64,000 bases of DNA from assembly GCF_009834535.1 (NCBI RefSeq), contig NC_045725.1:1302001-1366000 (forward strand), given 5' to 3'. Within the stretch, counting starts at the first letter, position 1. Each line of letters opens with the position of its first letter. The DNA is from Camelus ferus (lineage: Eukaryota). Made by a program: the position numbers and the translations under genes. The notes beneath the pieces are model-generated. The model had not been told where the DNA came from and searched no databases. It saw nothing but the letters and a program-made list of their open reading frames with translations. Of this stretch, positions 8,619-59,969 are shown piece after piece.

Positions 8619-8692
8619 CTAAAGTCATCTTGCACCAACTCTTCTTTTTCATCACGGGGTCCAAAATCAGCAACTGCCAGTAACCGATCAAC
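8619..8692 (-). CDS. RBFA: RBFA coding exon 6
   Basis: CTTTTCAG|GTTGAT...TTTAG|GTAACA. 74 nt encoding VDRLLAVADFGPRDEKEELVQDDFR. Confidence 0.95.
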
Positions 8693-10743
8693 CTGAAAAG
8701 GAACAGAGGGTAATCTGGCAAGCCATGCCTCTCCACACCTACGTCCAAGCCTGGGGCCAGTGAGCATGGGCATCATGCCACCTGTGCCAGCGACTGCAGG
8801 CCTCACCCTGCTTCACATGGGTCCTTCCACTGATGCTCCGACACCTGTCACCTTAATCACATTTGCTCTGATAATGAATTGAGGCTTTTTGAAAACTACC
8901 CTTAAAACTTGTAAATGTCAAACTTCAAACTTACAAAGAAACCAGTTAAATATTAGTTGAATTACTAGCACTTACTCGTTAGTAAGATGCTTTAATTTTG
9001 CCACAGAATTTGTCTGGGTTAAAAAGCCTCCCAGCATGGCAACATGAGAGTCACAAAGTCTGGCGTGTGAATCCAGCTCCACGGTGGCTGATGGACCCAG
9101 GCTGGAAATGACTGCTGCTCCTTAGCGGGGCCACCACGGGCCTCTCCACCCCCACCTGCCTGTACTGACTGCCTGCGGATCGTCCTGCCCGGCTGTGCAC
9201 TGAGACCCAATGTCGCAGCAGGGGCCACTTCTCTGCAAGCCCAGGAGAGCCTGGACCAGAAACAGGACCCGTCGCTCCCAGCAACTGAAGCATCATCACC
9301 AACCACTGAGGTACCAAAAAAAACTACAAAGGTGAAAAGCAGCAGAAGCAGAGAAAAACCAGTCCACAGAAACTATTCACAACGCATATTTTGCCAAGGG
9401 CCCTGTACCAGGCACGGAATGAACCTGCATGGCTCGATGATAAGCAAACCTTATAAAAAACGGGCAAAGGTCTGAACTGGCCACAAAAGAGGGACCAACC
9501 ATGGGCACAAGGAAGACGCCCGGCGTCACTAGTTGTCGAGAAGATGCAAGTCTGAATCCCAGAACGGCAACCCTGAGTGTTTACTGGCGGTAACATCAAC
9601 ATTGCTGAGTTACTCAGGGCTCAGTCTGGACAGAGCTTATTACTGCTCCTGCTTCCCATGTCCAGTCACCTGACCTGAAGACTATCCTGAGGCTGCAAAG
9701 TAAGCTGAAAGTACCGTCACAACTCCCTGTGATTATTCAGTACGGTGCTGACCCTGACTACGTGGCAGGGCAGACGCCGGGTGGGCCTGAGGGAGCTTCC
9801 AATGGCATGATCTCCAGAGAGAGAGCCACCCAAACCCACAGAGCCAGGCAGGAACTTTCGGCTATTAATTCTTCCTCTACAGAGACAGGGACAAGTCACA
9901 GCACAGTGAAACCAGAGGGCGCACTGCTGGACAGATGGGACTCCATCTGCCAGCTACCCCATATGCTCACGGGTGAATTCCATGCCGAGTACCCGCACGG
10001 CACATGCCTGACCTAAACTCCACCTGAACTGGAAAGCACCAGTGTACTGTCACCCCTCTGTTCCCCGTTCTAGCAAGGAAAACCAGACACCTACAAATGT
10101 TATTATCTGCATAATGTTTTTGGTATTGCTTGTATAATAAATGACAAAAGACAACAATGTAATTAGATTCTTTCCCCTCTGTGGAGCTAAAGACTACCTA
10201 GTCCTACAGTGAATAACAGCCCCCTCATCATAATCTTGTAAACGCCACTTTCTGGGTTTTCAGTACACTTTTTAAAGGTATAACGTACCTTAATAACCAC
10301 CAAGTAACCATCACCTAGATTAAAAAATACGTATTTTTTAACAGGTTTTAACTTTTGTAATTAACCTACAGCTAAAACAAGGAACATAATCATGACAATT
10401 GCAGCTACAGGACAGAAGGTAAGTGTCAGCCTTGTTGGTGTGAAGCAGCCACAGACAGGGGGAAACCCGGGAGGTGGGAGGAGCAGGCAAGCACAGGAGA
10501 GACTGAGGGCTGGTTCACTCGTTAGGGCTCTACTGACAAGCCCTCAAAAGTTAAAGCCACAGAAGTGGTTACCAGGGAATCAGGCAAAGAACAGGGCAAG
10601 GGAGCCTAACTCTTCATTTGCACCCTGCCGAGTGTTACCTGCAAACACTGTGTACATCATCTTTTGAATATTCAGAAATTAAATTTAAAATCTTACTCAT
10701 GTGAAAGTTTACATCATAAAAAGGTCATAATGTGAAAGCTCAC

Positions 10744-10828
10744 CTCGGCTACTGCTGCGTATTTTTTGTCCTGAACAAACACAATCGGCGGCATGTTCCT
10801 CAGGATCTGCTGGGACATCACAAGATGC
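10744..10828 (-). CDS. RBFA: RBFA coding exon 5
   Basis: TCTCCCCAG|GCATCTT...GCCGAG|GTGAGC. 85 nt encoding [28 protein letters not shown], with the RbfA P-x-I-x-F-x-x-D motif. Confidence 0.95.
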
Positions 10829-11706
10829 CTGGGGAGACAGAGGTCACAGGTGACACTCAGTGGAGGGTGACAGTGACAGAAACGTCACCTCACAAGGAGG
10901 CATGAGATCTGCTCATCACATCAGAAAGTCTTCTTTAGCCAATGCCATGTTATGAAGGGGATACAAAAATGTATCACCAAATCCTTGTAAGTAGTCTTAT
11001 CCGAATCTGGACACACCCTTGAGCATAACATGGCCGTGGACTCCGTGGTCCGGGCACCAGCAACAAGCCAGGGCTCCGTCCCTCTGTTCAGAGGACACTC
11101 ACCAGTCAAGTGTGACTGACAGTCCTCAACTACCCAGGTGCCAGATGCAGAAATGAACTTTGTGTCCTTCAGTCATGCAGTACATGCAAGTTCAGGTGCC
11201 AGAGGTATCCAGTGAAAAGACTGCTGTGACACGTGGCATGTCTGCTCAGTGACAGCGGACCTTGGTGCAAAGTTATGGAAAAACCTTTACACTAAACCTT
11301 GGGGAGAAAAAGAGTTGGGAAAGGGACATTCTGTTCAACTGAATTTTCTGACTAGCTAAAAACTGATCAGAAAACAATACTGTCACCTCAATACCTGTTG
11401 GAAATCTCTCATTTTATTTCCGTTAAATATCAAAAATGAAATTAATTGCCCATTCTTCAATATACAACTTTAGAGACTCAGGGTTAGTGTGATGTGTCAG
11501 TGATCGCCAGCAGGTGGGGAAGGAGATGGCTTATGAAAATGCCACACCTGTCCCTTCCAAAGGGAAGGATGGCGACAGGGAGGCCAAGGAGGGACAGAAC
11601 GGAGGGAGGTGGGAAGGGGGAACCCAACGTGAGCGCTCGTCAGTTGGGTCTCTGCATTTTAAAGACTGACAAGAAAACCGAGTAACCTCTTTAATATCAC
11701 CCAGCT

Positions 11707-12921
11707 CGGTGGTTCTCAAAATTCTTGGTCTTAGGACTGCCTTTACACTCTTAAAAGTGACTGAGAACAACAAAGACCTTCTGTTTATGTGGGTTCTATC
11801 CATCAATATCTACTGCAGTAAAAGTTACAGCTGAGAATTTAAAAAATACATACATATTAATTCACTTAAAATAACAAACCCACTACATGTTCACAGATAC
11901 TGAGTAATCAGTAAAAAATAACCACTACGTTATTTTAAAACTAAGCAGAGTCGCACTGCTTATGTAGTTCCAAACTTCTTCAACACCCAGCATAACAAAG
12001 ACAGCTGGGTTCTTATCTCTGTCTGCGTGTAATCTGATCTATCACTTTGTTTAAAACATAAGAAGATCGGGCCTCACATAGACCTGTAACTGAAAAGGGG
12101 GCATATGAACAGCCCTTGAGAAAAGTGTGGATTTTTGACGCTACACAAAAACCCAACAAATAGTCATTTATTAAAAGTCAGCAGCAAAGTGAGATCTGCA
12201 GGCAGATCACTGAACATGTCACTCTCTGCACGCTGGAACCCACTGGTCGGCTTCCCTTTGAGCCGCCCTCTCCCCGTGCATGACTCTGTAACCTCACCAA
12301 GTCACACAGATTCTCAGAATGAAGCCAAATGTTACATCACCACCACCCGCATCAAAGAGGTCTTCTCTGCCGCAAGACTGTCAAATTCACGGTGCTGGAT
12401 ACACGTTTTCCAAAACCCTGATGTTCACTGAAAGCTTAAATTTTATCACTGGCAACAAACACGGTCAGTTGGTTTCCCTGACGTGACAGGTTTTTTGCTA
12501 ATTTTGGAGAAAATGTCAAATCCCACATCTGAGTAACGGTGGTCATTTCACTTGTTCTTTCAAGTGAAGAAGTGTCCATTTTGGTTCACGATCCACAACT
12601 GCAGTGTTTTTCCAAGACAATCATCAGTTTCATGCATACTTCCCACCACACAGAATAATAAATAGATGTGCCCAAGGGTCGAGACTTAGTAAAATTAGTA
12701 ACTTCTGCTTATTCATCAAGGATGTTCTTAAACAAAGCTGACAGCTTTTTACTGAGAGCACATGGCTGAAGCTACAACGACCACCAGGACATCTGACACA
12801 GCCCGCCCCGCCCCTGTGGCTTCAGTGCAAACGGAAGACAACACCTCACCATAAGAACTTTAACTCACAACCTCCCCGCACAAAGGACGTGGGACCCAGG
12901 ACCAAACCCTGAGAACTGCTG
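11707..12921. mobile_element. hAT (Charlie-like) DNA transposon in RBFA intron 4
   Basis: Terminal inverted repeats CGGTGGTTCTC.../...GAGAACTGCTG and an imperfect 8-bp target duplication ACCCAGCT/ACCTAGAT. Subfamily not certain. Confidence 0.7.
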
Positions 12922-13050
12922 ACCTAGATTATGGCCGACAGAAAAATGTAAATTCTGCTCTGAAATCCAAGAAAACGCTCCCCAAATTTTCCTTAAAGGC
13001 AGAAATACTGGACAAACAGGCTGAGGGTCAGGGTCAAGTGGAGGCCTCAC

Positions 13051-13163
13051 CTCATGTGTGCAGCGCTCCTCTGCAGCACGGCCTCTGTGTGCGCATTCTG
13101 AGCTGCAGAGAGACTGGCCTTCCAGGACACTCGGCAGGCGGAGAAGTCTGCAGTCAGAGAGAC
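13051..13163 (-). CDS. RBFA: RBFA coding exon 4
   Basis: GGCTCAG|GTCTCT...ATGAG|GTGAGG. 113 nt encoding [38 protein letters not shown]. Confidence 0.95.
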
Positions 13164-13747
13164 CTGAGCCCCAACCCCACCCGTATCACTCTCCACTCAC
13201 GTGGGCTTTCCGGGGACAGGTCCGCAGAGAAGCACTAACTCCTGGGCTGTTGTGGCTTTGGGCACCCACCGCCAGGGATAGTGACCCAGCGCAAGAGCCA
13301 CAGGCCACCTGCTGCCCAAGCTTGCATGGTGAAGAAAGCAGCTCCCAACCAGACCCCAGCCCCGCTCACAGAAATGTCTCAACCTGGGCTGCTCCCACTC
13401 TGGGGGCAGCAGCAGCAGAAGCTGCCGCCTCTGTCTTCACACGAGGCAAGGGCAGACATGTCCACCGCCCATCTGACCCCCAAGACTTCGGACGCCCTAT
13501 TTTGGCACTCACGGCTCTGGCGCTCTGGGTGCTGTCTGGGCAAGGAACCCCCCACCACCTCATCACCCCCCCCCAACCGCTGTGCACAGCGAGACCTCTG
13601 CTCTGGCATCCCAAGTGCACCCTCCTCTCCTCAGGACCTAAATGGCCACACCCAGCATCCTTTCTGCTTTTAGGTGACACAAAGGACCGTGGACCGTGAC
13701 TGAGGCCTCAGCAAGGCTGTCCGTCCTCTCTGGCCCCAGCGGGCTAC

Positions 13748-13924
13748 CTTGGAGAGCTCCACATTCAGGTCGCAGACCTCCTGGCTCACTTCAGGGGTAC
13801 ACAGCAACCCCGTCAGCGCTTTGTGGAGGAGGCCGTTCAGGGCCCTCAGGCGCACGTGATCTTCCTTCCTGGCTCTCTTGGAGGTACTCTTCACTAGGGA
13901 TTCCAGCTGGGATGGCTTGTAAGT
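13748..13924 (-). CDS. RBFA: RBFA coding exon 3
   Basis: TTCTTGGAG|ACTTAC...TCCAAG|GTAGCC. 177 nt encoding [59 protein letters not shown]. Confidence 0.95.
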
Positions 13925-13957
13925 CTCCAAGAAGCAGAAAAGCAGACAGAAAGACCA

Positions 13958-14320
13958 AGCACTAGAGACACTGCAGGTTCACTTTCAGACCACCATAATA
14001 AAGCAAACACTGCAATCAAGTGAGTCACATGAATTTTTTGGTTTCTCAATGTACATAAAAGCTATGGTCACCCTGTGGTTACCCTATACTGTAGTCTATT
14101 ACACATGCAATAGAAATACATCTAAAAAACAATGTATATACCTTAATTAAAAATACTATATTCCTGGGGGGGGAGGGTACAGGTCAGCATAAGAGTGTGT
14201 GCTTAGCATGCATGAGGTCCTGGGTTCAATCCCCAGTACCTCCATTAAAAAATAATAATAATTTTAAAAAATACTTTATTGCTAAAAAACACTAACCATT
14301 ACCTGCCAATGCAGGGCAGC
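13958..14320. mobile_element. Tigger1-like DNA transposon fragment hosting a SINE
   Basis: CAGACCACCATAATAAAGC...GAGTCACATGAATTTTTTGG...TATACTGTAGTCTATTA resembles the Tigger1 end as I recall it. Confidence 0.65.
14166..14265 (+). mobile_element. Camelid tRNA-derived SINE (Vic-1-like)
   Basis: GGGGAGGGTACAGGTCAG...GGTCCTGGGTTCAATCCCCAGTACCTCC with an A-rich tail. Target duplication AAAAATACTATATTCCT/AAAAATACTTTATTGCT. Confidence 0.9.
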
Positions 14321-14661
14321 CATCAAGCTTCAATTTATAAAAACCAGAGCTTCTGGGAGACGCAACAAAACAAGCTGCGTCTATGTACCCACACATTCAC
14401 ACGTACTGTACACACACCACAGCGAAAGCTGAATGAACATCACCACGTTAGGGTTTGATGATACATGTGACATTCTGGGAAGCCTGACTGTAATTTTTCT
14501 TAAAGATAAAAATTCCATGTTACTAGTGCATCCAGTCCCACCCACAGACCCTGTGCCCCCCAGTCCTGAAGTGGAAGGCTGGCCAGGCCAGGTGTGGCCG
14601 ACTCTTGGAGCCTCAAGCCCATCAAGGCTCTAAAGGCCTGTGGCTGCTTCTGTATACGTAC

Positions 14662-14704
14662 CAAGTGAGAGCCCAGGGAAGGACCTTCATACCAGAACTT
14701 CTTC
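14662..14704 (-). CDS. RBFA: RBFA coding exon 2
   Basis: CCCTAG|GAAGAAG...CACTTG|GTACGT. 43 nt encoding (K)KKFWYEGPSLGSHL. Confidence 0.93.
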
Positions 14705-15229
14705 CTAGGGGGAGAAAGTGAGAGTGACGCTGAACAATGATGGCAGATCAAGTAAGAAAAAGTTACAAAAGCTAACTCGAGGTTGTCATAACATAACTGT
14801 TTCTAAGGAGCTCAACCTGGACATAGAAATGGTGTTACTGGGGGTCTAAAAGATTCAGATGTCCAGACAGCACAGGTTGTGGGAGAGAGACAGAAGAGAG
14901 TCTTAATTCAAGCTCGTAATTTTGACTAAGGTCTACTTCTACTCCCAAAGGGAGAGAAGGAGAATCTTAAAAATACAGCTACCAAACTGCCCTCTACTTG
15001 ATAAAGCCGTTTCCCGGGGTATAGGGACCGACACCACCACACGTCAACACTGGGATGGAACAACCACGCAACAGAGGGCAAGTGGGGAGCCAGGCTCCTC
15101 TCTGTGCAGACAAGCCAGGGCAGGAAGGGAGGATGGCCCGTGTGCCAGTGGGTAAGAGACGAAGCCTAGTGGCTTCACAGCTGCAGTGGTGACAGGTTGA
15201 GTGTGTACGGATAAGCACACACAGAAACC

Positions 15230-16240
15230 AGCGTCAACACGCTTCTGTGCCTGGTCAGCTGAAAGGGCCTCCGAAACAGACAGACACCAGCAGCAATGAC
15301 AGAAGCTCTCAGATTGTGGTTTCTAATGTCACTTTCCAATCAAAGGAACAAGAGCTCCTTGGAGAAATGGCTGATTCAAGGCTAAGGCATGCTGTAGTGC
15401 CAGAAAGCAAGGCAGTGCTGAAGAGCATTTCAATTTAAAAACCACTTCAAAACTCCATAGTGATGAGGTGTGTCAAAGGGACAGAGGAGCCACCTGAAAG
15501 TGCTCCCAGTGGCCAAAGCTGGAACAATCTGAGCAAAATTATAACCAGGAGTCCACACTGATAGGAATTAATTAATAAATGGAGAAAAGACACATCTCCC
15601 ATGCAGAATTCCAGGTAATTCATAAATATAACTCCCCACTCCCTAGGTGTGGGCTGCATATGGTGACTTCCCCTGCAAAGAAGACAGAATGGAATGGGGA
15701 AGGGGGACTTTACAGTGGATAAACCTGAGACACAGATGACCTCAGACAGTGATTAAGACTGACACCAAGACTGAAAAGCCATGTTGACAGCATGCCCCTT
15801 GGATATAAGACAAAAACGGCACTTCACAGGGGTGGACTTCCTCCCCAAAACCAAGACCGCAATATAATCACACAAATCCCAACACAGGGGCAACCTACAA
15901 AATAGCTAACCAGTACCCCTCAAGCTGTCACGGTCATCAAAAACAGGGACAATCTGAGAAACTGCCATAGTCAAGAGGAACCTAAAAAGATGACAACTAA
16001 ATGTAATGTGGTCCCCGGATGGGATCCTGGAACAGAAAAGGACATGAGGGCAAGACTAAGTAAACATAAATAAAGCACGGACTTTAATTAATAATAAGGT
16101 ATCAATATCCATTCAGCAATTGTAACAAACACGCCACACTAACCTAAGATGCTAACATCGGGGAAACTGAGTGTAGTTAATGGGAACTCGGTACTGTCTT
16201 GCTAATCTTTCGGTAAATCTAAAACTATTTTTAAAAGGTC
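15230..16240 (+). mobile_element. Old LINE-1 3' end (L1MC-like)
   Basis: Motifs such as GGATGGGATCCTGGAACAGAAAAGGACAT and GGTAAATCTAAAACTATTTT are typical of L1MC 3' UTRs. Boundaries are approximate. Confidence 0.65.
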
Positions 16241-16477
16241 TATTAAAAACATACCTACAATAGAACTAACAATGATATGGAAATCAACTTATTTCACTAT
16301 ACTTTTCTCTCATCATTAAAAAACCTATCCTGACATGCCTTCTTTACTCTTCAAGTTAACCCCAAATAGAAAACGTTAATATACAAAGAAACACTTTACA
16401 TATTTCCCTTCTTTCTCTCTTTACTTGATGAGAACTACTCTCCTTAGAAACCCTTCTAAGTAACAAGAATCAACATA

Positions 16478-16734
16478 CAGTCTCCCCTCCGTATCTGCAG
16501 GGAATTGGTTCCAATCCCACAGATACCAAGATGTGAGGACACCTGAGGCATACAGTGTTTGCATATGATCTACACACATCCTCTGGTACACTTTAAAATC
16601 TAAATGCTATATAAGTAGCTGCTAGCATAAATTCAGGTTTTGCTTTTTAGAACTTCCTGGAATGTTTTCCAAATAGTTTCAATCCAAGGTTGGCTGAATC
16701 TGAGGTTGTGGAACCTCGGACCCAGGGTGGACTA
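16478..16734. mobile_element. MER2-like (Tigger-derived) MITE
   Basis: TA|CAGTCTCCCCTCCGTATCTGCAGGGAATTGGTTCC...GGTTGGCTGAATCTGAGG...GGTGGACT matches MER2 termini as I recall them. Confidence 0.7.
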
Positions 16735-16949
16735 CAAATGTACACAGCACTTTGCTTCACACGTTCACGATATCCGTTTAGGACATGATGACAACTTTTA
16801 GGACACTTAACACTTAAAACTTTAACATCACAACTGGATGAAAAAACAGAAAAACGGCTGGGTGGGAAAAACGGCAAACGTTGACGTGACGGGTGGAATT
16901 ACAGGTGATCTTTCAACAACCATAATCTAACAGGCAAAGACTGCCCTTA

Positions 16950-17950
16950 CGGACTCGGCTGGAAGCTTGAGCTCCAGGGTAACGCCCAGGCGGAGTACCT
17001 GCCCCGCGCTGCCCCTCGTCCCGCACAGCCCTCGCCCCGGGGAGCATCCCCGCCCCGCGCAGCCCCTGCCTCGGGGCCCCCAGTCCAGTGGAGCTACCCG
17101 GTCCCAGGGAACCCCCCCCCGCCCCCGCAGCCCCCAACTCCGGGGCACCCCGTCCCGCGCAGCAACCTGTCCCACGGAGCCTCCACCCCGGCGCCCCCAA
17201 CCCCCACTCAGGGAGCATTACTTGGTCTTGGAAGCAAATTTCTTGAGCAGGTTCTTGCGGCAGGAGACCGGCGAGCTATGCAAGCCTCGGGCGCCGCCCA
17301 AAACGAGCCCCGCGTGGACCCTCAACAGTTCTTGGAGAACCGCCCACATGTCCGCCAGCGACCAGCGACCGGACATTACCGGGAGGCGTCCGCGGGGCGA
17401 CGTGACGTGGGGGCGGGCGACGTGGAGCGACGGGGGCGGGGCGATGTTAGCGTACCGACGTGGCGCGGGGGGGACATGCGGCGGGGCGACGTGGGCGGAG
17501 CAACGTTAGTGGGAGATCGAGGTGGGACGGTTGGGGGCGGGGCGACACGATGGGACTTGAGGCGACGTGCACTCGGGGAGACACAGGGGTCTACGGGACG
17601 GACGAGAGGACCAGTGCCTAGAGGACTGGTAGGCGAGACGTGAAGCGGCGGGGCGGAGCGATGTGCGGGAAAGGCCGGAGCGGGGCCGGGCGACACGCAA
17701 CACGTGGGGGGATAGGCGGGGCCGATGGCTCGGAATCGGACGCCTGTGGGCGGGGCCAGGCAAGTGAGACGAGCCTGGTGACGTACTGAGGGCGGGGCCT
17801 GATGGCGTCTGGGCGGGCGGGCCACGCCTCCGTCACTCTCCCAGAGCTAGCCGGGCTCAGCCAGGGGCTAGGGGGCGCAAGGTGTGTGGGACTCGGTGGT
17901 GAAGCGCACGCACCCCCTAGATGTGGCGATTGCAGAGCGAGGAACACAGT
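16950..17950 (-). promoter_or_regulatory. RBFA: RBFA CpG island / promoter
   Basis: Dense CpG and many GGGGCGGGGC boxes around RBFA exon 1. Confidence 0.85.
17222..17349 (-). CDS. RBFA: RBFA coding exon 1
   Basis: ATG at 17349 gives MWAVLQELLRVHAGLVLGGARGLHSSPVSCRKNLLKKFASKT(K), with donor ACCAA|GTAATG. The seven exons sum to 996 nt, or 331 aa plus stop. Confidence 0.92.
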
Positions 17951-18754
17951 TTACGCTAACGTACGAAGCTAGGAGAGAAGCGTGCGCTGCAGCTCCCTAA
18001 CTACAAAATATCAGATGAAGAAAGCAAGGGGTGAGAGGTCTAAACCGGGCAGTTTATGTGAAAGGTGGGTGTCCTGGAGCAGAGCCCCTGCTGCCTGCAC
18101 GACTGGGAGGGACTCGGGTTTTTCTGTCTGCACTGCCAGTTCGTTTGCTCACTTCCTCACCGGGCCACCTGGGGAAAGACAGCGGCTTCGAAACTACTCC
18201 AGAAAGGAGGCGTGCGCACCCCCGAACCCTCTTCTATCCCGCACTGGCGCACACAGCTCCTGGCCGTGTTCGGCCTTCTCCCCAGTAGGAAGTAAACCCC
18301 TTGAGGGTGGGGACTTTTTTCCTGTAGCAGCCCCAGCTCTTAGAACAGGGCTTGGCACATCGAAGGTGCACAAAAATCTTTTTTTTTTTTTTTTAATGAT
18401 AGAAACAAATAGTGATTAGGGTACTAGCGGACTATGTAATCCAGTAAAAGATCGGAATTTAACAGGATTTATAGCAACATAGCTCACTGGAAAATCCACA
18501 GGGTTTTAATACAGAATCAAGTATTTGCAGACTTTTGGGCTCTACAGAAGTAATTCTCTGTGCTCAGTTTCATCGTGAATAACAATAGAACTTCCTTCAT
18601 ACAGCTGCCTTGAGGATGAAAAGAAGGAAAGCATTTAGCAATCTCTCAACAAGTGGTAACAATTATTACTATTCCTCAAGTTTTTCATCGAAATAGTATT
18701 AATCCAATCTATATAAGGGACTCTAATATATATAAAGTACATGTTCTTTTCCCA

Positions 18755-18760
18755 TTTATT
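18755..18760 (-). terminator. Candidate polyadenylation signal of the 2-hydroxyacid dehydrogenase gene
   Basis: AATAAA on the minus strand, about 40 nt after the TGA at 18802-18804. Confidence 0.6.
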
Positions 18761-18801
18761 CTGCCATGTTTTCATCCCACTGACTTCTCAGCCCACAAAA
18801 A

Positions 18802-18958
18802 TCATTCAAGTAGCACTTCATTAGGAATAGGAAGGCCATTGAGAGAAGCCAGGATGCTTTCAACCAGACTCTCCATCATCTGTCGTCTGGCTTGATGAGT
18901 TGCACTTCCAATGTGAGGTGTCAGAGTGACGTTCTTCAACTTGAGCAAAGGGTGATCT
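18802..18958 (-). CDS. GRHPR-like D-2-hydroxyacid dehydrogenase, coding exon 5 (last)
   Basis: CGTTTCAG|AGATCAC... encodes (R)DHPLLKLKNVTLTPHIGSATHQARRQMMESLVESILASLNGLPIPNEVLLE*. Contains the catalytic His motif TPHIGSAT. 157 nt. Confidence 0.93.
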
Positions 18959-20436
18959 CTGAAACGCAGATTATTTGGGAAGACTATTCAGAATCGTTTG
19001 GCCTCTTTAATTTCATATTCTGGTTTCATACCCCTACCCTGAGATGGTGAAGGTCTTGTAGCGAAGTCTAGATTACACCTAGGTGTGACCACTGCTTATC
19101 TGACCCTGGTACAGGTGACCCAACATTTCTGGGTGTAAAACACATACCCTAACTGCACCCAGGCCATTAGTACACAGTGGCATAACATGCCTGCTGGACT
19201 AAACGACACTGACCCACAAGACAAAAGGGCCTCGGGGAGACAGGCCCCATGGGACAAGCTGAATATGCCTTTAATGGGAGTGGCCTTCAGAGGGAAAAGA
19301 CTGATTAATTAGAGTTGGCAGATTAGAGGGAGATCCCGTCCAGGAAGAAGGCCAAGGATGGGAGTCAGCCTGGAAAGATAATGAAGTTTCAGTGAAGTGG
19401 CAGACTCAGAATGACGGATGATACTGAAACCCAGGGTTGGGGAAGTGCTGTCACCTGGCCCAAGAGGGCTCTTTAGCATTTTAATACAGACAGAAGCCAA
19501 AGTAGCCATGCAGCAGCCATCCTCCAACCTAGCTACTGAGGCTCAAGGGACACACCTTTGGGAATCTTGTGGACAACCCCCAAGCCTATGGAAGCTCTCT
19601 GGAGGCACCTGTAATTCCTATCAATGCACTACACCTGCCCTCACCTCCAGGAATGACTGAAATAAGACACATCCTGGGGCACAATTAGGGATAGGAACTG
19701 TTCTGAACAACACTTGTCCTCCCCACATGAAGGAGGTGGGACCCACTTTATAACAGCATGTGATGGAAACCAGTCTCAGTACAAGTGTGTGAACTGAGAC
19801 AGGGTGACTGGCTTTGTCCTGACTCGGAACCCAAAAGGAGCTGAATCATGGCCAGTTGTACCAACACCTGGCCGTAATGTCATCTGGTACACAGGCTAGA
19901 TACAGTTCTGTTGAGAAGGCATAGCAAATACTTCTGTAACTGCTACTGATTTGTCATGTGATGAAACCGAATTGTGCCATGACCTTGCTGCAATACGGTG
20001 CAATGCTGGAATTGTTCGTAAGACGCCTCCTGTAAGTACAGCATATGATAATACTGATGTTGAAGATCAGTGGTGCTGAGAGACTGAGTTAAAGCCTCCT
20101 TGGGATGTTAAACCAATGGGAAATGACTGGCCTGAGGGAAAACTGGATTTAGCTAAATAGCGAATTTATATACTAAATAGTGCTACACAAGTTCATCATA
20201 AGGTACAAATAGTAGTATATCAAGGGGTGTGGGGAACAATCAAACTAGCGCAAAAACACAATGGTTTAGTTGTTTCTTTAAATCTATCCCTGCTCCACAT
20301 TGGCTGCTCTGAATGTCAGGCATACTGATATTATTGCTGCATCTGTCACAAAAATACTGTAGTAAATGTAGGTGTTCCAAGAAATATGATCATTTTGCCA
20401 TAAGACAGCCTAGGCCCAGGGCCAGGGGGTGGCCTG

Positions 20437-21037
20437 TGTAGTAAATAATTAATTTACAGGCAGGCTTAGAGCTCTAGAACCCTGCACATTCCAAGATAAG
20501 GCTGGCCTTTGGTCTCTGGGAGATAACCTGGGAGCCCTGGAGACATACTGCCTGATAAGAGTGTCTTCTTATACCTGGGGCCTTGGGCAGAGCTGGGTAG
20601 TTTACACTACAGTGTAATTTGTGGTGAATGCCTGTTTTGGTTTGCCTAGGCTCTAGTCCACCTGTAGCCAGTTTGACCTCTGCAGCAGCTAGAGACTAAG
20701 AAGCCAGTGTCAGAAATGTGGGCACTCCATGCCTGCATACCTGACCCTTGCTCCCAAGGCTCGGGTGAGTGTCCCTGGTTGGAGATACTTCACATGTGTT
20801 GTCACTCATCATTGCTGGAGGCAGTAAGTGCTGCCCACGCAGCTCCACTGGGAGGACACCTGGAAGTTCAGGCCTGGTTCTCCTGGACACCACCCTATCA
20901 GTTTTCTGCTTTTGCTGATTTTAAACTATGTCTTTTCACGTAATAAGCTAATTGTGAGTATGAAAACTTTTCTGAGTTCTGCACACCTTTCTAGCAAACC
21001 ATTATGCCTGAAGGTGATCTTGGGGACTCCTGGCACT
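20437..21037 (+). mobile_element. ERV LTR (MER21-like)
   Basis: Starts TGTAG. The 3' part TGTGAGTATGAAAACTTTTCTGAGTTCTG...GAAGGTGATCTTGGGGACTCCTGGCAC resembles MER21 ends. Confidence 0.65.
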
Positions 21038-21732
21038 ATTGGCAAATAAACTTTTTCTTTTGAAAATAATCTGTAGTGAATCCTTTTGTAAAGCAAAGAA
21101 TATTTATGTAGTGTGACTAATATAACCCTAGATTTCCTACTTTTTAAATAATTTTTTTCATAGTAAGCAGAATCAGAATGTCTCCCTGAAAAACCAAGAT
21201 GAAACCTGAAACATATCTGATAAGTACAGAGATTAGAAATTAATATAGATATCTAAAGATTGTTATTCTTGAGAAAATTGCTAAAGCTCTTGGCCACAGA
21301 AATGATTTCATGTGGGACATGGGGAGTGCATCACCTGTTAGGATAAACTAGACTTCGGGATGTGACCCTGGTATTTGCCCTGTGACATGTGAGTAAAAGG
21401 CAACAGGGGTGATCACATGACTTCTAGGTGTCTGAGTAAGTTGATGGCTGTCAGAAATGGTCATGCTTCTTAATTTATATCGTGATTATTTTTTCATCGT
21501 AGATTAGTGGCTCTCGTATATCTATCAACACTTTTTGTATTAGAAAACTGGAATTTGACACAACATTGTAAAATGATTATAAATCAATAAGAAATGCTAA
21601 AAAAAATTAATACAGCACAGGAGCACATTCCCTTAGCTGTCAGGGTGTCCAGAAGACTCCAGTGTGCACTTGTGACAAAACTTGAGTGGAAATAAGTGAC
21701 ATCTTACAGTATCATGAAAATAGTTTTGACTT

Positions 21733-21816
21733 GTAAGTTCCTCTCTACCTGCTAGAGTACTGCCTGATTCATGAATTATTAAATAAAGCCAATTAGATCT
21801 TTAAAATGAAAAGAAA
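21733..21816 (+). mobile_element. 84-nt retroposed insert with AATAAA, A-rich tail and 17-bp target-site duplication
   Basis: GAAAATAGTTTTGACTT occurs at 21716-21732 and 21817-21833. AATAAA at 21782-21787. Confidence 0.8.
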
Positions 21817-22743
21817 GAAAATAGTTTTGACTTCACAGACCCCCTGAAAGGGTCTCCAGACCACATTATGAGAAACTCTGTTCTGAATAAATTGCTGTTT
21901 TTCTCAGAAATGTCTGTAAGTTCTATGGTCAATCTTGATACACTTAGATAGTAAATTTGGCTATAATGTCAAGCATTCTGCTGACAGTAATTTGCTCAGT
22001 GGATAGAAATCAAAGTTGGGGGAATCAAAGGTCAGAACAGCTGGTGTAATGAGTGGCCGGATCCAGATGTCCCAACAGGCTGGATCACTGGGTCAAAACA
22101 CACAAGCAAATGAAATTAAATACAAGTAAATGTAAAATTCTACACATGCACTTAAAAACAATTGAGGGACTAACAATTCCAGTTTTAGCTGACTAAAAAC
22201 TCAATGAGCTACGGTGCAATGACCCTCTAGATACAGGCTGTGGCCACAGCTCTGTCCCCCTCTCCCCAGGGCTCCAGCCACAGCACGGGTCCTGGATGCC
22301 AGTCTCACGGGCACACTTTCAAAGGACCTGAAAATCTAAGTGCTGAAACACAGTAATAATGATGAGGTGTCTGTAAATGATATCAGTCAGGCTACAAGTA
22401 AAGGATGTGAAGATATTTAGCCTCAAAAAAAAAAAAAGACCAAGATAAAATGTAGTGATTAAAATAATGCAGGTCTGTAGAAGAATGATCAAAGTCGGCC
22501 TTCGATGCTCCATAGAGCAGACTGGGGCCAGTGGGTAACCGGAGGACGTGAAAAAGACGGTTCTGTGCAGCCTCCATCCTTGCGATCTGGGCCCCAGGGC
22601 CCCAAGCACCCTGTCCATGGAGGTGTTGAGGCAGACGCCTGACACCTGCAGAACTGGACAACACCAGACCCTGCACGATCACAACATGTGACTCTGAGAC
22701 CTGCCCCCTGGAGCCGGAGAACTGCAACTGTCGGCTTCCTTAC

Positions 22744-22840
22744 CTGGGTAGGGGTTCGGGGGACGTCACATCCAGCGCTGCCGCTTTAATGACCCCGGTC
22801 TGAAGGGCTTCCACCAGGGCGTCCTGATCCACTAACGGAC
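22744..22840 (-). CDS. GRHPR-like dehydrogenase, coding exon 4
   Basis: ATCCATCCAG|GTCCG...CCCAG|GTAAGG. 97 nt encoding (G)[31 protein letters not shown](R), with the ALDV-x-x-x-EP motif. Confidence 0.93.
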
Positions 22841-24018
22841 CTGGATGGATGAGACACCTCCTCTGTAGGAACCACGGGAAGGATGCTCTGGTCGCATGAG
22901 CTACTGTTCAGACACATCCTGATCTCATCAGAAGTCTGACAGAGCACGTGAACTTTGTCCTGTCAAGCGCCTGCCACATGCCCAGAGAGGCTCAGCCCTT
23001 CATAGACACTGTCTTGCTGAATCGTCCACTTACCCAGGAAAAGGAAACACTCATTTTACAGATAAGAAAACTGAGGCTCACAGGTTACAAGCTCCCCAAA
23101 GTCACACTTTCCTACCACATTCCCCCGGATCCGAGCCCAGGTCTGTCTGACACCAGCCTGGGCCTTCTCACTGCACTGCACCACCTCCCAAACCACCAAA
23201 GGGTCCCAGCTAAGGAATGTGTAGTTTTAAATACACATTAAAAACTGGAACAGTCACAAACACGATCCACAACTGCATTTCAAATACAAGACATCAGGGT
23301 GAGCAGCAGCAGCTGAGAAGGAGACACTCTCCTTCCAGCAGAGACCTACGAGGAGCCTACTTCCAGCTGACAGGCTGTGAGCGGCCGCCCACCTGGCAGG
23401 ACAGGGAGCACCCACGGCAAGCATTCCTCTCCTTGTTTTACAGATGAGAGACACAGGTGGATGTTGTCACCTATTGTTGGTCATGCCAGGTGCTCCAGCC
23501 CGAGACCCCCAAAGGCAAACCGCCTGCATGTCTGATGTCAGCACAAACCCTCCCATGTGTGTCGAGGGCTCTGCCTGTCTTCTTATAGATGCCACAGCAA
23601 CCCACCAACGCTGGTTATAGCACAGGGCCTACTGCCTCCTGCACACATGCACAAAGCTCTACACCAGTGTCAAATGACCAAATAATAAAGTGAAGGCTCA
23701 GAAAATTCATCCCCATAAATTCTGCTTAATTACCTGGGAGATCAAACTGTGATGCCCCCCACAAGAAGACATCCAAACTTGGATGTGAGACCTGCCACAG
23801 TGGAATGTTACCCTCTGTTGCTAACTTGAGGTTCAAAAGGATGTGGAGATAAAAATCAGAAATATCCCTAAATAGAAAGTAAAATCCCTTTAACTCAACA
23901 CCCCCCAGTCTACGTGGACCCTTCAGGCCATGCAGGGGAACGGCTGACTGGAAATGATGAGGGGTATTGGGGGGGGGTTCTCCTGCAGGGTCCTCAGCAC
24001 ACAGCAGGGGGCAGGTAC

Positions 24019-24197
24019 CTCTGCCGATGTTGATGAGAGTGGCGCTGGGCTTCATCAGACTCAGCTCCCGCCTCCCAACCAGCCCCTGGGTCTGGGGTGT
24101 CAGGCTCACAGCCAGCATCACAAAGTCTGACCACTGAAGCAGGTCATCCAGCCTCGCACAGTAAGTGGCCCCAACAGCTCCCTCCTCCTCCAATTTC
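24019..24197 (-). CDS. GRHPR-like dehydrogenase, coding exon 3
   Basis: TTCTCTTAATAG|GAAA...AGAG|GTACCT. 179 nt encoding (R)KLEEEGAVGATYCARLDDLLQWSDFVMLAVSLTPQTQGLVGRRELSLMKPSATLINIGR(G). Confidence 0.93.
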
Positions 24198-25547
24198 CTA
24201 TTAAGAGAATAAGGAAGAAAAACCACATTCTCCAGTTAGAAATTCATCAAGTTGCCCCAGGAGGAGTTTCTGAGGGCCCAGAGGACAGGGGTCACCCAAG
24301 ATACCCTGTGGACGCCTCTGGGTTCTCCAAGGTGAGACCTCAGCATCTGCGTGGCTTCACCCCAGTCTGAGAGCCCCCTGAGGTCATGAGCTTCCTGTCG
24401 CTCATCTGTGAACCCCCAGGGTCTGCTACAAGCCCACTTGTGTGTCAGACATGCTTTCAATGATGTCAAGTATTGCTGAATGTGGGCAAACACATCAAAG
24501 TTTCCAGAAAAAACAGAGAAACAGGAGAGGGCCTAGGAGTGCCGTCTGCTCAACAGAGAGGACGGATCCAAGGGTCCAGTGCTGGCAGGATTGTGTGCTT
24601 TATTCTGGGTCCAATCTTACCTCCTGCTCTGGCCACACCAGAAAGCTGATTATTTAACAGAAATTCCAAGCTCCAGGAGGTCACAGTATCCCTGGTAGCC
24701 ACTACTGCCCTCCAGATAAGGAATATAAAACTATATGAATTCTCTCCTAACATGTCTTGGCCAGGGGATGGCCTGGAGGAACAAGGAACGGCCATGTGCT
24801 GGCCGCTGTGAATGCCCCGCCCACATCACACACCTAGAGCCCTGGCCGCTGCGTCTGCCTTCCTCGCACTGAGAGCTGTGACAACTACCCGAGTCTCTCC
24901 ACTGTCCACTGAGCAAACACAGTGACTGTAAGGGAGACAGCCTCCCAGCTCACCACGCCTCCATGAATGGAAATCTACACTACGGCAACAGAAGCCACTG
25001 AAAGGCTGTGAACCATGCCATCCTCTGGCTGGTCTGCAGATGGGGCTGGAAGTCTGGGAGTGGGTGTGTGTTTCAAGTGAGGAAGGACGGGGCCTGAGGT
25101 GTGATGGGTGGCGACGGTGAAGTGAGAGAGAACAGGAGGTTTGAGAGTCGTTGTTTGGATGGAATCAACAGGACCAGGTGTTGGGCTGAGTGCTGCTGGC
25201 AGTGCCAGCGGAAGGGGGCCTCAGCCTGAGTACCATGGGGGGGGGGAGCGGACACCTCAGTGTGTTGTGTGTAGTAGAGTGTGGACAGCATCTCCCAAGA
25301 GCAAAAAATCACTTTACAAATAAAAAAGCACAATTGTAGGTGAGCCAAAAATCTCTTTTCTTTCTGGTGAAATTTTTTCAAGGTAATCATAAAAAACCAC
25401 AGTGCCTTGATCATCAGTCCTACTCTTTGGAGAGAAAGAACAGGGGAAGTGTATGAAAAGTGGAGGCATAATACCTCTAAGCCGTGTTTAAGGCAGGGAT
25501 GGTGTAAGTGCTGCTCGTTAATTTCAAGTCCATTTTCTGAATTTTAC

Positions 25548-25719
25548 CTCCGTTTCCTATTGTGGTACAAAATCTTCATTTCAAACGCTCTGGCCCTCTG
25601 GGCAATCTTATAGCCGATGCTGCCCATGCCGATAATTCCCAGAGTGGCCCCGGTCACTCCCTGACCCATCCAGTTTATAGAAAATTTCTCCGTATCTGGT
25701 GAAACAGCCAACTGATGAC
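25548..25719 (-). CDS. GRHPR-like dehydrogenase, coding exon 2
   Basis: TTTTTAATTTCAG|GTCAT...CGGAG|GTAAAA. 172 nt containing the Rossmann motif [11 protein letters not shown] and LYHNRKRR. Confidence 0.93.
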
Positions 25720-25900
25720 CTGAAATTAAAAAGGTGCAGATTGGGCAGTGGGCAGTGTGCACAGCACACACGGAAACCCCACAACCCGCCCTGTGACATC
25801 GGGGCAGTGATGTAACAAACCAGAGCCTCCTGGTGGAAGGCTTTAAAATAACAACTTCTTTCGCATTCAGGGAGGATTTTTGGTAAAAATTTGGTTTTGC

Positions 25901-26000
25901 AGTGTGTGTGTGTCTGTGTATGTGTGAGTGTGTGTGCATGTGTATGTTTGCATGTCTGAGCATGTGACTGTGTGTGTGTGTGTGCATGTGTGACTGTGCA
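25901..26000. repeat. Compound (TG)n/(CA)n microsatellite
   Basis: About 100 nt of interrupted TG dinucleotides within an intron. Confidence 0.9.
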
Positions 26001-26511
26001 AGTGTGAACCAGCAGCAGCGGGAACAGCACTGGCCTGGTTCCCGCTGCCTCCTTCCTCAAGCCGCTTCACCCCGGGGCTCCGTCAGGACAGTGTGAAGCA
26101 CTGCATCACTTTGCTGCCTTCCTGGAGATGCTCCCAGCGATGATGTCCAGTGTGTGGAGAGGTGGGATTCCGCCACTCGCTTGTAGGCCTCCACCCCGGT
26201 AGCGTGGCATGCTGAGTGGCCAATGAATCACCCCAGGGGCCTTTTCACAGTGGTGCTGAAGTTACTTCATGCACACAGTTACCCACTGCTGCGTAGTGAG
26301 TGGAGCTCGGTGGGGAGAAACAGGGCATCAGACAGAGGCCACGTGCCCCAGACACTGAGCTTGGCACTGAGGGGGCTATAATCCACTAAGAGTGGCTCCG
26401 ATCCGCAGGGCAGTATGAGGAACTCAGAGCCAGAAGATAAAATTGTACCATGCGTGGCATTGAACATGTCACCTGATCTCCGGAAAACCAGCATCTCCAA
26501 TGGCTGCTTAC

Positions 26512-26893
26512 CTTCCACTACTCTCCGGGCTGCAGCCAGCAGCAAGGCCATCCCCAGGTCTGCCGTGGGGCTGGAAACAGCATGTGGTGTGCTGGCCACC
26601 TTCACGCCAGAGCTGGCAATGAGCGCCAGGTCCAGGTGGTCCAGCCCGGCCCCCGCGCTGGCAACGATCCTCAGGGAGGGCAGGCTACGCAGGAGCTCCC
26701 GGTCAACAGCTGGCCTCCCGCCCCAGACGAACACAGCGCGGATCTTCGGAGCTAGTTGTGTTTTATTCTCCAAAAATTCTTCCATGGTGATGAGGTGAAA
26801 GTGTTTCTGCAGATCTCTCACGTGATCTTCACATATACCATGCGGTCCTTTAAACCCAGACACCAAAACTCCAGGTAGGTCCTGATCGCCCAT
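26512..26893 (-). CDS. GRHPR-like dehydrogenase, coding exon 1
   Basis: Acceptor TTTCTGCAG|GCCATGG gives a strong Kozak context. 382 coding nt MGDQDLPGVLVS...SAGAGLDHLDL...TADLGMALLLAAARRVVE(G), donor GAAG|GTAAGC. The five exons total 987 nt, or 328 aa plus stop. Confidence 0.93.
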
Positions 26894-27364
26894 GGCCTGC
26901 AGAAAGTTGAAAGCGGTGTCTGCTGTCAAAGAGTCTTCATGAGAATAACCGCTACGTTATTCTATCACTCTTTAGATTTTCTAAATGGCAACAGGGCAAA
27001 TTCACTTTACTTCCTGGATACATTCCCATAAAAACTGAACACAACAGACCCAGAGCTCTGCGGGTACCAATGTTGGCACCGTGCCCACTTTCCTCCCTAC
27101 CTCACCTGGGTCCTTACTTCTGCCCTGCGGCGGGGGTGTGTGTGTGTGTGTGAGGGGGGCGGGGGAGGGAAGCCTCCCAGCCCCACTCAGGTCCTCATGC
27201 CTTTGTGTGACCCCCCCACCCTGGAGTCTGCGTCTAGTGAAGGGAACACAGTGGAGCGAGGGAGTTCACTGCCCTCTCCCACTGTCCCCTCTCCTAGGGC
27301 AGCCCAGTGCCAAGCTGGGGTGCAGCCCTGTGCCCAGGCCCAAGTGAGTGAGAAGTAAAACTCA

Positions 27365-28924: not shown

Positions 28925-28989
28925 CTTTGTTGAAATCGCCTTCAACAGATCCAAGGCTATAAAGTCAGGATTTTTTTCTTGTAAAGCCC
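28925..28989 (-). other. Candidate 65-nt non-coding 5' exon of the dehydrogenase gene
   Basis: Long pyrimidine tract ending GATTTTACAG|G and donor CAAAG|GTAATA. No ATG inside. Usage is inferred only. Confidence 0.4.
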
Positions 28990-33374: not shown

Positions 33375-34950
33375 CAGACTAACTGATTTCAAAACTTACT
33401 ACAAAGCTACTAATCAAGACAGGGTGGTATAAACATAAGGCTAGACTTACAGATCAGTGGGATAAAGTTGAGACTACAGAAATAAATGCTTATATTTAAA
33501 TTAAGTTGATTTTCTTATAAATCCAACACGTAACCAGTTTTAAATACATATGTACAAAAAAGAGGAGAAAATGAAGTCAATTGATTTTCAACAAGGGTGC
33601 CAAAGCAATTTGATAAGGAAAGAATAATCTTTCCAATAAGTAGTGCTGGGGCATCTGGATAACCACATACAAAAGAATAAAGTCGGACACCTACCAAACA
33701 CCATACACAAAAATTAACTTGAAATTATCATAGATCTAAAAGTAAGAGTTAAAACTATAAAACCCTTAGAAGAAAACAGGAGTAAATATTCATGACTCTG
33801 AGTCAGGCAATGATTCTTAGATATGACACCAAAAGCACAAACAACACAAGGAAAAAGATACATGGGATTCAATCAAAATTTAAAAGTTTTATGCTGAAAT
33901 GATTATCAATAAAAAATAAGAAGTCAGTCCACAAAACTGGAGGAAATATTTCATATCATGTATTTGATGATGGATTTCTATCCAGAAAAATAAAGAACTC
34001 TTACAACTCACAAATAAAAAGACAACTAATTCATTTTTAAGTGGCCAAGGAACTGAACAGACATTTTCCAAATGGCCAATAAGGACATTAAAAGCTCTGT
34101 ATCACTAGCCATTAGGGAAATGCAAGTCAAAAATCATAAGACATCACTTCACACCTACCAGGATATCTTTTTAAAAAGACAACAAATAAGTGTAGGCAAA
34201 GAAGTGGAGAAATTCAACCCCACTACATGGCTGTCGGAATCGTACTACTTCTGAAAAGTTTGGCAATTCCTCAAAATGTCAAACAGTTACCGTATGATTC
34301 NNNNNNNNNNNNNNNNNNNNNNNNNNNNNNNNNNNNNNNNNNNNNNNNNNNNNNNNNNNNNNNNNNNNNNNNNNNNNNNNNNNNNNNNNNNNNNNNNNNN
34401 NNNNNNNNNNNNNNNNNNNNNNNNNNNNNNNNNTGGACAGATAAAATGCAGTATATCCACATAATAGAATATTAGTGACCAATAAAAAGGAACTAAGTAC
34501 AGTTGATCCTTGAACAATGACCCTCCACGCACTCAAAATCCACGCACAATTTTACAGTGGGCCTTCATATTCCCGTTCCCTCCTGTAGACTCTACCACCT
34601 GCAGGCCACGTGGTCCCCGTGTAAGTGGCTGCATCGATCAAACCCCGTTGTCCCAGGTCAACTGTACTGATGAGTCTACAGTGCAGGTGAGCCCCGAGAA
34701 GAGCATGCTCAGTGGGAGGTCGGGAACAGAGGACTTAAAGTGTCTGGCATAGGCGGGGGTTGCCAGCGCCAAAGGATGGAGGGAAACGGGGCTGAACGCT
34801 TATAAGCAGGGGGTTTGGGGGCTATGAAAGTCTTCTACAATCGGACTGTGGCGTTGGTTCCACGACTCTGTGAGAAACTACCTCACTGTAACGGGTGAGT
34901 CACTTCACGGTATGTGAACGTACCTCGACAAAGCTTCCCACGGAAGAACC
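33375..34950 (+). mobile_element. Old LINE-1 ORF2 3' part and 3' UTR, interrupted by a MITE and an N-run
   Basis: ACTTACTACAAAGCTAC...CAAGACAGGGTGGT, CCATTAGGGAAATGCAAGTCAAAA and other L1 3' motifs. Confidence 0.8.
34500..34664. mobile_element. Tigger2-derived MITE inserted in L1
   Basis: Terminal inverted repeats CAGTTGATCCTTGAACAA / TTGTCCCAGGTCAACTG, flanked on both sides by TA. Confidence 0.75.
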
Positions 34951-35530
34951 ACCTGGAGCGCGGGCGGCAGCACGACCACGTGGGAGCACCGAGCTGGACC
35001 GTTCACGTGGGAGCTTTACCACAACAAAACACGTTTAAAAATACTAATTTCAATACACTATTTGTGGGCATCTGAGTCTTACCGGTACCCTCCTGCCCAC
35101 CCCCACCCCGGGTCCCGGGGCACCGATCGGGGAGCAGTTCTGAGGCGGCGCAGCCCCGCCGCCGCTCGCACCGCAGACGTCCAGCCGCGGCCCCGACTCC
35201 ACCACCCCTGCCGGGCGCGCGCACGCACCTGCCACCTCCCACGCACTGCCGACGGCGCGCGTACAGGCCGGCGCTCACGCACTGCGGACGCGCGCACGCA
35301 CACGCCGGCGCGCGTCCTCGCCCGGAAGGACGGCTACGCGGGAGGGCCCAGTGTGGGCGGAGGAGGTACGTGCAGGGCTCCCGGTGAGAGGAGGGGACAG
35401 CGGGTGTGGGAGCCCGGGGGTCCTTTCGCCCTGGGTTCTGGGCCGGGGGCGGGGGCGTGCCGGGGGCGGGGGCGGAGTCGGGAGGACAAGGTGGACCCGG
35501 GCCTGGCCCCTCTCCCTGGCACACCGACTG

Positions 35531-35668
35531 GTGAGGCCCGGGACGGGTGGGGTCCCCGTGGGGTGAGGCCCGGGACGGGTGGGGTCCCCGTGGGGTGAGG
35601 CCCGGGAGGGGTGGGGTCACCGTGGGGTGAGGCCCAGGAGGGATGGGGTCTCCGTAGGGTGAGGCCCC
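35531..35668. repeat. 32-bp GC-rich minisatellite, about 4.3 copies
   Basis: Unit GTGAGGCCCGGGACGGGTGGGGTCCCCGTGGG starts at 35531, 35563, 35595 and 35627, with a partial copy at 35659. Confidence 0.95.
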
Positions 35669-35747
35669 GCCGGTGCGCTGCAGTGGAGCTGGATGGAACT
35701 GACTCTTGGGTTCCCGCCACCCCGCTCGCAGACCCTTCGGCCTCAAG

Positions 35748-35900
35748 ATGTCGTACATGCTCCCGCACCTGCACAATGGATGGCAGGTGGATCAGGCCAT
35801 CCTTTCAGAAGAAGACCGCGTGGTCGTCATTCGGTTTGGACACGACTGGGACCCTACTTGTATGAAGATGGACGAGGTTTTGTACAGCATAGCTGAAAAG
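35748..35900 (+). CDS. TXNL4A: TXNL4A (DIM1, U5 snRNP 15-kDa protein) coding exon 1
   Basis: MSYMLPHLHNGWQVDQAILSEEDRVVVIRFGHDWDPTCMKMDEVLYSIAEK, donor AAG|GTAGCG. 153 nt. Confidence 0.98.
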
Positions 35901-41553: not shown

Positions 41554-41657
41554 GTTAAAAATTTCGCAGTAATTTATCTTGTGGATATTACAGAAGTACC
41601 TGACTTCAACAAAATGTATGAGTTATACGATCCGTGTACTGTCATGTTTTTCTTCAG
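41554..41657 (+). CDS. TXNL4A: TXNL4A coding exon 2
   Basis: TTTTACTTGTAG|GTTAAA...TTCAG|GTATGT. 104 nt encoding VKNFAVIYLVDITEVPDFNKMYELYDPCTVMFFF(R). Confidence 0.98.

Positions 41658-59702: not shown

Positions 59703-59969
<267 letters not shown>

Follow-up and report, generated by a model that had tools for sequence, protein, structure and literature searches.

What does the interval between RBFA and TXNL4A in the wild camel genome encode, and does its product work as an enzyme? The interval lies within a window of 64,000 nucleotides (nt) from Camelus ferus (NC_045725.1, positions 1,302,001 to 1,366,000 of the forward strand; positions below are those of the window). Here a first-pass annotation, made from the letters alone, had proposed an intact 2-hydroxyacid dehydrogenase gene paralogous to GRHPR, which we refer to as the GhrB-like gene. 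Our data make it very probable that this is a functional, already annotated camel gene that shares a promoter with TXNL4A and is vertically inherited and distinct from GRHPR. Its product would be a reductase of the GHRB type, acting on small 2-oxoacids with nicotinamide adenine dinucleotide phosphate (NADPH). The proposed placement between the two neighbors also held, with RBFA on the minus strand and TXNL4A on the plus strand (Table 1).

The coding gene occupies the minus strand. Its five exons (382, 172, 179, 97 and 157 nt) join into a 987-nt frame that encodes 328 amino acids and a stop codon. GT...AG splice sites flank every intron, and the frame contains neither frameshifts nor premature stops. 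The exon sizes, splice sites and intact frame given by the first-pass annotation were thereby reproduced exactly. So were its strong Kozak start (GCCATGG, with the ATG at 26893) and its polyadenylation signal about 40 nt past the stop, which we place at 41 nt (AATAAA, 18760-18755). The 5' limit of 26896 did not stand as the start of the gene. This position is the first base past an acceptor (CTGCAG/GCC, the slash marking the junction) and adds 3 nt of 5' untranslated region (UTR) ahead of the ATG. Because 26896 sits at the acceptor edge, further exons upstream were hinted at, and two non-coding exons were indeed found there.

Splicing was evident from three assembled contigs, originating from three sequencing runs, each with the uninterrupted 987-nt frame (L003, 1612 nt; L016, 1535 nt; L017, 1337 nt). 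All three aligned to the window in seven blocks, with the same junctions and at 99-100% identity. As these contigs lack all six introns, they derive from spliced RNA, and the junctions that the first-pass annotation had wished to see in transcripts are confirmed. The messenger RNA consists of seven exons, five of them coding, with four introns in the coding sequence (CDS) and two in the 5' UTR. Exon 5 is used in all three transcripts. These continue past the first AATAAA and past a second candidate polyadenylation signal (ATTAAA at 18510), with L016 reaching 18414; a further candidate lies at 18397. All sampled exon 1 words were also present in 20 sequencing runs of unlabeled kind, 14 of which were guessed to be RNA. 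Residue 118 (window position 26542) is Met in place of Leu in two of the three transcripts (protein P0422), and the change is a polymorphism or else distinguishes the camelid samples. A run of Ns (34301-34433) lies inside the first intron, between non-coding exons A and B.

A CpG island contains the transcript 5' ends (35185), which are separated from the TXNL4A ATG (35748) by about 560 bp. The GhrB-like gene and TXNL4A, arranged head to head, therefore most likely share a bidirectional CpG-island promoter. Within the island, the observed/expected CpG ratio was about 1 in 35000-35399 and 0.54-0.64 in 35400-35799.

The gene is not hidden, as had been claimed. Its spliced product matches letter for letter a protein (P0415) that is listed in RefSeq as "glyoxylate/hydroxypyruvate reductase B" for Camelus dromedarius and as "B-like isoform X2" for C. 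ferus, both of 328 amino acids. It is identical to XP_006185743, XP_010959864, XP_031297551 and XP_064336541, and the RefSeq locus is LOC105103846. In two camel assemblies (L001, L002) the gene adjoins RBFA, and these differ from the window by one base in 14 kb and by 0.5%. Public annotation covers well over a hundred other vertebrates, with automatic names on orthologues in more than 60 mammals as well as in birds, reptiles, frogs and fish. This is thus a known, annotated gene and not a new discovery, and finding it carries no weight of its own because it is in RefSeq and UniProt for camel and many other species. What remains of interest is the function of the enzyme and its loss in some mammals. 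Searches of the literature by locus and product names returned no functional study of any member of the vertebrate group. They returned only incidental listings, in pig proteomics and chicken liver transcriptomics, so that the description of the enzyme as essentially uncharacterized was fair.

Family membership was apparent even from individual exons. Four of the five single-exon pieces matched Pfam 2-Hacid_dh or 2-Hacid_dh_C with E-values between 1e-8 and 1e-15 (PF00389, 9.5e-15; PF02826, 5e-12, 3e-14 and 3e-8), and both domains were found on the whole protein. The protein contains GMGSIG (residues 158-163), NIGRG (241-245), ALDV..PEP (266-274) and TPHIGSAT (290-297). All four motifs cited by the first-pass annotation (GxGxxG, NIGRG, ALDVxxxEP and TPHIGSAT) are therefore present, and Pfam agrees with its placement in the D-2-hydroxyacid dehydrogenase family, near GhrB and GRHPR. 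In 40 sequences ranging from camel to sea urchin, G158, G160, G163, N241, R244, D268, E273 and H292 were invariant. R182 and R185 were each kept in 39 of the 40 orthologues, position 295 was Ser in 30 of 40, and position 140 was aromatic in most. The camel protein also carries the GHRB motifs G294-S295 and R301-R-Q-M304 (Arg-x-x-Met). Near the catalytic His, such Gly-Ser and Arg-x-x-Met motifs have been tied to GHRB enzymes and to hydroxypyruvate activity, with Gly-Ser correlating with the highest hydroxypyruvate activity (PMC6303947). The product is, as predicted from these domains and motifs, a two-domain D-isomer-specific 2-hydroxyacid dehydrogenase (2HADH) of the GhrB/GRHPR (GHRB) subfamily.

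The fold agrees with this assignment. An AlphaFold2 model based on the 40-sequence alignment had a mean predicted local distance difference test score (pLDDT) of 92.8 and a predicted template modeling score (pTM) of 0.88. It matched the glyoxylate/hydroxypyruvate reductases of Bacillus, Pyrococcus, human and Thermus with template modeling (TM) scores of 0.83-0.88, and also superposed on E. coli GhrB. The nearest matches in PDB and Swiss-Prot were GhrB, TkrA, archaeal glyoxylate reductases and GRHPR.

We searched for orthologues with exon 1, a whale model and the tarsier orthologue as queries, together with cluster look-ups. Full-length orthologues of about 328 amino acids were found in pig, peccary, hippopotamus, ruminants, horse and rhinoceros; in many bats, cheetah, hyaena and shrew; and in elephant, dugong, tenrec, aardvark, sloth and armadillo. 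They were likewise found in rabbit, pika, several non-muroid rodents, tree shrew, lemurs, galago and tarsier, and in marsupials, birds, crocodilians, turtles, lizards, tuatara and frogs. Orthologues occur in fish and rays as well, and more distant relatives in amphioxus, a tunicate and echinoderms. Phylogenetic analysis of 51 orthologues by maximum likelihood gave a tree that matched the species tree, with strong support at its main nodes (vertebrates, 99/96; mammals, 100/97; Laurasiatheria, 99/97), with a camel branch length of 0.11, equal to the tree median. The picture is that of an old vertebrate orthologue group with vertical descent. Because some manta ray RefSeq models fuse the GhrB-like gene with RBFA, the linkage of the two is as old as jawed vertebrates (cartilaginous fishes).

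Several marsupials have two copies per chromosome record (P0356/P0361, P0358/P0378, P0357/P0367 and P0374/P0395). Several bird models are 467-563 amino acids long (P0152, P0153, P0194 and P0208), as if annotation had fused tandem copies.

Selection on the coding sequence was estimated from pairwise Nei-Gojobori ratios of nonsynonymous to synonymous substitution rates (dN/dS) among eight mammalian CDS, drawn from the window and spliced contigs. The ratios were 0.13-0.30 overall and 0.15-0.27 for camel against the others. This comparison had been suggested by the first-pass annotation; the values indicate purifying selection and are not near 1. The two camel species differ by 1 synonymous change in 987 CDS sites, versus 0.38% in flanking and intron DNA. 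Expression is also documented in pig, where the orthologue was present on intron-free contigs (spliced messenger RNA) in 74 blocks of the sequence collection and is listed among the identified proteins of a proteomics study (PMC11083045).

Paralogy to GRHPR was judged from bit scores and identities. Human GRHPR is 35% identical to the camel protein (193 bits), compared with 37% for the Bacillus enzyme 9M0T (206 bits), 37-40% for archaeal glyoxylate reductases (199-206 bits) and 38-39% for E. coli GhrB (not scored). GRHPR is thus no closer to the camel protein than the prokaryotic enzymes are (36-40%; 199-206 bits). Because its identity to GRHPR is no higher than to the bacterial and archaeal enzymes, the camel gene is, on these scores, a deep paralogue of GRHPR within the GHRB subfamily and no recent duplicate. 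These identities and the relatives in amphioxus, tunicate and echinoderms uphold the earlier proposal of an ancient paralogue, and the six introns uphold its exclusion of a retrocopy. The first-pass annotation had itself argued from a supposed contrast of five coding exons here with nine in GRHPR. Indeed, a processed GRHPR retrocopy is ruled out by the four coding and two 5'-UTR introns and by the 35% identity. An unprocessed (unitary) pseudogene is ruled out by the intact frame, the kept catalytic residues and the dN/dS of 0.13-0.30.

Human GRHPR (2GCG, 2H1S) shares the two-domain 2HADH fold (TM 0.84-0.88) and has a similar length, of about 328 amino acids. In a phmmer alignment, camel R244, E273, H292 and S295 pair with its R245, E274, H293 and S296. 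Camel R182 and R185 pair with R185 and R188 of GRHPR, residues that contact the NADPH 2'-phosphate in the 2GCG structure. Both proteins also carry the Gly-Ser motif. They differ in the N-terminal domain, which is divergent (the phmmer alignment starts only at camel residue 63), and in locus, GRHPR lying elsewhere than between RBFA and TXNL4A.

The best matches in both sequence and fold were the bacterial GhrB/TkrA enzymes (E. coli GhrB; Bacillus subtilis 9M0T), at 206 bits, 37-40% identity and a TM score of 0.87. They have a YHNR..R cofactor segment in common with the camel protein; unlike theirs, the camel gene is eukaryotic, bears introns and has been vertically inherited in deuterostomes. 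Archaeal glyoxylate reductases (Pyrococcus; 6BII, 2DBQ, 5AOV) have a catalytic set like that of the camel protein at 37-40% full-length identity, but a longer loop ahead of GxGxxG, and belong to another domain of life. The vertebrate orthologues (e.g. the zebrafish zgc:136493 family, pig LOC100157017 and chicken 'probable 2-ketogluconate reductase-like') are equal in length, 57-85% identical and, back to manta ray, linked to RBFA. They show no substantial difference from the camel gene.

Alongside the gene structure, splicing, conservation, residues and fold, all of which were observed, we propose an activity. The enzyme would catalyze NADPH-dependent reduction of small 2-oxoacids, with glyoxylate and hydroxypyruvate the most likely substrates in view of the residues and the model. 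Hydride would be supplied by NADPH, His292 paired with Glu273 would provide acid-base catalysis, and Arg244 would hold the carboxylate. We would expect the enzyme to be dimeric and cytosolic. Judged by its motifs, a part in handling oxalate precursors, as raised by the first-pass annotation, is conceivable.

Several observations weigh against this proposal. The GHRB subfamily is promiscuous, and membership in it says little about the substrate (PMC6303947). Scores against NCBIfam NF011938 and NF009714 were about half of the cut-offs (247 vs 492 bits for the bacterial GhrB equivalog and 250 vs 455 bits for the glyoxylate reductase one), so that function cannot simply be copied from these models. 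Camel Phe140 stands where GRHPR has Trp141, a residue that limits substrate size. The catalytic His292 is absent from camel isoforms X1 and X3 and from an RBFA fusion model, since exon 5 is skipped in each. In the literature searched, no enzyme assay was found for any member of the vertebrate group. Finally, the gene was lost repeatedly in other mammals, and is therefore dispensable in some settings.

It is possible, though somewhat unlikely, that the enzyme is active on a physiological substrate other than glyoxylate or hydroxypyruvate. Candidates include a 2-keto-aldonate (2-ketogluconate, 2-keto-L-gulonate), an aromatic 2-oxoacid (hydroxyphenylpyruvate), and a branched-chain or 'damage' 2-oxoacid. 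The promiscuous GHRB subfamily includes such activities (PMC6303947), automatic names vary between '2-ketogluconate reductase' and 'GhrB-like', and both are attached to 9m0t, the best solved match. The exchange of the bulkier Trp141 of GRHPR for Phe140, and the occurrence of Ser at position 295 in only 30 of 40 orthologues, point the same way. However, the camel protein itself keeps both Gly294-Ser295, the correlate of the highest hydroxypyruvate activity, and Arg-x-x-Met (PMC6303947), and position 140 is still aromatic in most orthologues.

The models lacking His292 raise a different concern. In the C. bactrianus UniProt model, exons 1-4 are joined to RBFA exons 2-7 (window 7311-14709, minus strand). 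As fusions with RBFA recur in manta ray, these models hint at either conserved read-through transcription or a recurrent annotation artifact. Together with isoforms X1 and X3, the fusion makes three annotated alternative models without His292, and the orthologue has decayed in fox and toothed whales. The camel copy might on this account be transcribed but recently non-functional, or might yield mostly non-catalytic products (isoforms without exon 5, RBFA read-through). We consider this very improbable. The frame is intact with all invariant residues kept, two camel species share an identical protein, and exon 5 was present in every assembled transcript. The camel branch length, at the tree median, and the camel-to-other dN/dS of 0.15-0.27 speak against it too. 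Least credible of all, and close to dismissed, is a mainly non-enzymatic, NAD(P)H-sensing regulator resembling the CtBPs, which are themselves 2HADH proteins and show weak dehydrogenase activity (PMC6303947): the nearest relatives by sequence and fold are metabolic GHRB reductases and not CtBP, there are no added domains or tails, and the full catalytic set is invariant.

With a functional GHRB-type reductase as the preferred reading for camel, we turn to its fate in other mammals. In Arctic fox (GCA_963924105.1, L013:10001-15048), the syntenic TXNL4A-RBFA interval contains a degraded copy. Exon 1 has a five-residue deletion, exon 3 an in-frame stop and a change of the catalytic Arg to Ser, and exon 4 a change of the ALDV-motif Asp to His; no exon 5 was detectable in the syntenic interval. 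By these lesions, the fox copy reads clearly as a unitary pseudogene. Two database models from toothed whales (P0282, P0297) are without the GxGxxG loop and have STSAAVR in place of INIGRG. A whale exon-1 contig (L014) has a one-residue deletion and a change at the otherwise invariant Arg123. In toothed whales the gene thus appears to be inactivated, whereas hippopotamus has an intact protein.

Anthropoid primates, mouse and rat did not appear among the best 120 matches to the tarsier orthologue, all of which were at most 85% identical. Human 2HADH genes have been counted as four (PMC6303947). The absence of anthropoid matches and the four-gene count are consistent with loss of the gene on the human lineage, as the first-pass annotation had proposed, without amounting to proof. 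The closest fragments in the exon-1 match list came from pig, bat, whale, fox, horse and others and are uninformative on human. The literature examined on human gene losses contained no mention of the GhrB-like gene, that naming both TXNL4A and RBFA held nothing on the human arrangement, and that on the human long non-coding RNA name RBFADN consisted of expression lists only. Altogether, the comparisons indicate that the GhrB-like gene was lost independently in some mammals.

A broader generalization, which we regard as doubtful, is that most mammals have a second, GRHPR-independent NADPH glyoxylate/hydroxypyruvate reductase, with separate losses in anthropoids, muroid rodents, canids and toothed whales. 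If this were true, human and mouse would rely on GRHPR alone for glyoxylate detoxification, and a back-up glyoxylate reductase would exist in pig, rabbit, cat, horse and camel. Such a difference would matter when animal models of primary hyperoxaluria type 2 are chosen, and for how species differ in oxalate stone disease. The putative enzyme is a conserved vertebrate reductase of 2-oxoacids whose subfamily also contains the enzyme of primary hyperoxaluria type 2. It is apparently missing from standard biomedical species (human by inference; the fox, a relative of the dog, directly). The significance would be either a real gap in our knowledge of glyoxylate metabolism or a dispensable, redundant paralogue.

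Coordinates of the GhrB-like gene, its alternative exons and its neighbors are collected in Table 1. The gene ends about 1 kb upstream of RBFA.

Table 1. Features of the GhrB-like locus in window coordinates. Slashes mark splice junctions.
Feature	Position	Strand	Details
Non-coding 5' exon A	34924..35185	-	5' end at least 35185; L003, L016 and L017 at 100% identity; donor GAG/GTACGT; within CpG island common to TXNL4A
Non-coding 5' exon B	28925..28989	-	65 nt; in L003, L016 and L017; acceptor TTTTACAG/, donor AAAG/GTAATA
Coding exon 1	26512..26896	-	3 nt 5' UTR + 382 nt CDS (26893-26512); residues 1-127, substrate-binding domain; Pfam 2-Hacid_dh, E 9.5e-15
Coding exon 2	25548..25719	-	172 nt; GMGSIG dinucleotide-binding loop and Arg182; Pfam 2-Hacid_dh_C, E 5e-12
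Coding exon 3	24019..24197	-	179 nt; begins at Arg185, ends with NIGRG including catalytic Arg244
Coding exon 4	22744..22840	-	97 nt; Asp268 and catalytic Glu273
Coding exon 5 and 3' UTR	18414..18958	-	CDS 18958-18802 (157 nt including stop); TPHIGSAT, catalytic His292; UTR to at least 18414
Alternative 3' exon, RefSeq isoform X1 (363 amino acids)	22392..22727	-	tblastn of P0364; no exon 5
Alternative terminal exon, RefSeq isoform X3 (318 amino acids)	21964..22092	-	tblastn of P0416; no exon 5
CpG island	35000..35750	.	Between divergent first exons; G+C 0.62-0.79, CpG observed/expected 0.54-1.09 (four 200-nt bins)
RBFA	7311..17376	-	Downstream, same strand; Pfam RBFA call adjoins the gene in L001 and L002; exons mapped via P0455
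TXNL4A	35748..43660	+	Divergent, upstream; exact Dim1 peptide matches in three exons

Two further observations concern the remainder of the window. Plus-strand Rfam matches resembling transfer RNA (tRNA) occur at 5844-5916 and 14173-14244 (37.3 and 29.7 bits), within the RBFA interval; they are probably the heads of tRNA-derived short interspersed nuclear elements and not tRNA genes. Positions 58001-60000 are very rich in G+C (0.676), presumably marking the CpG island of the next gene past TXNL4A.

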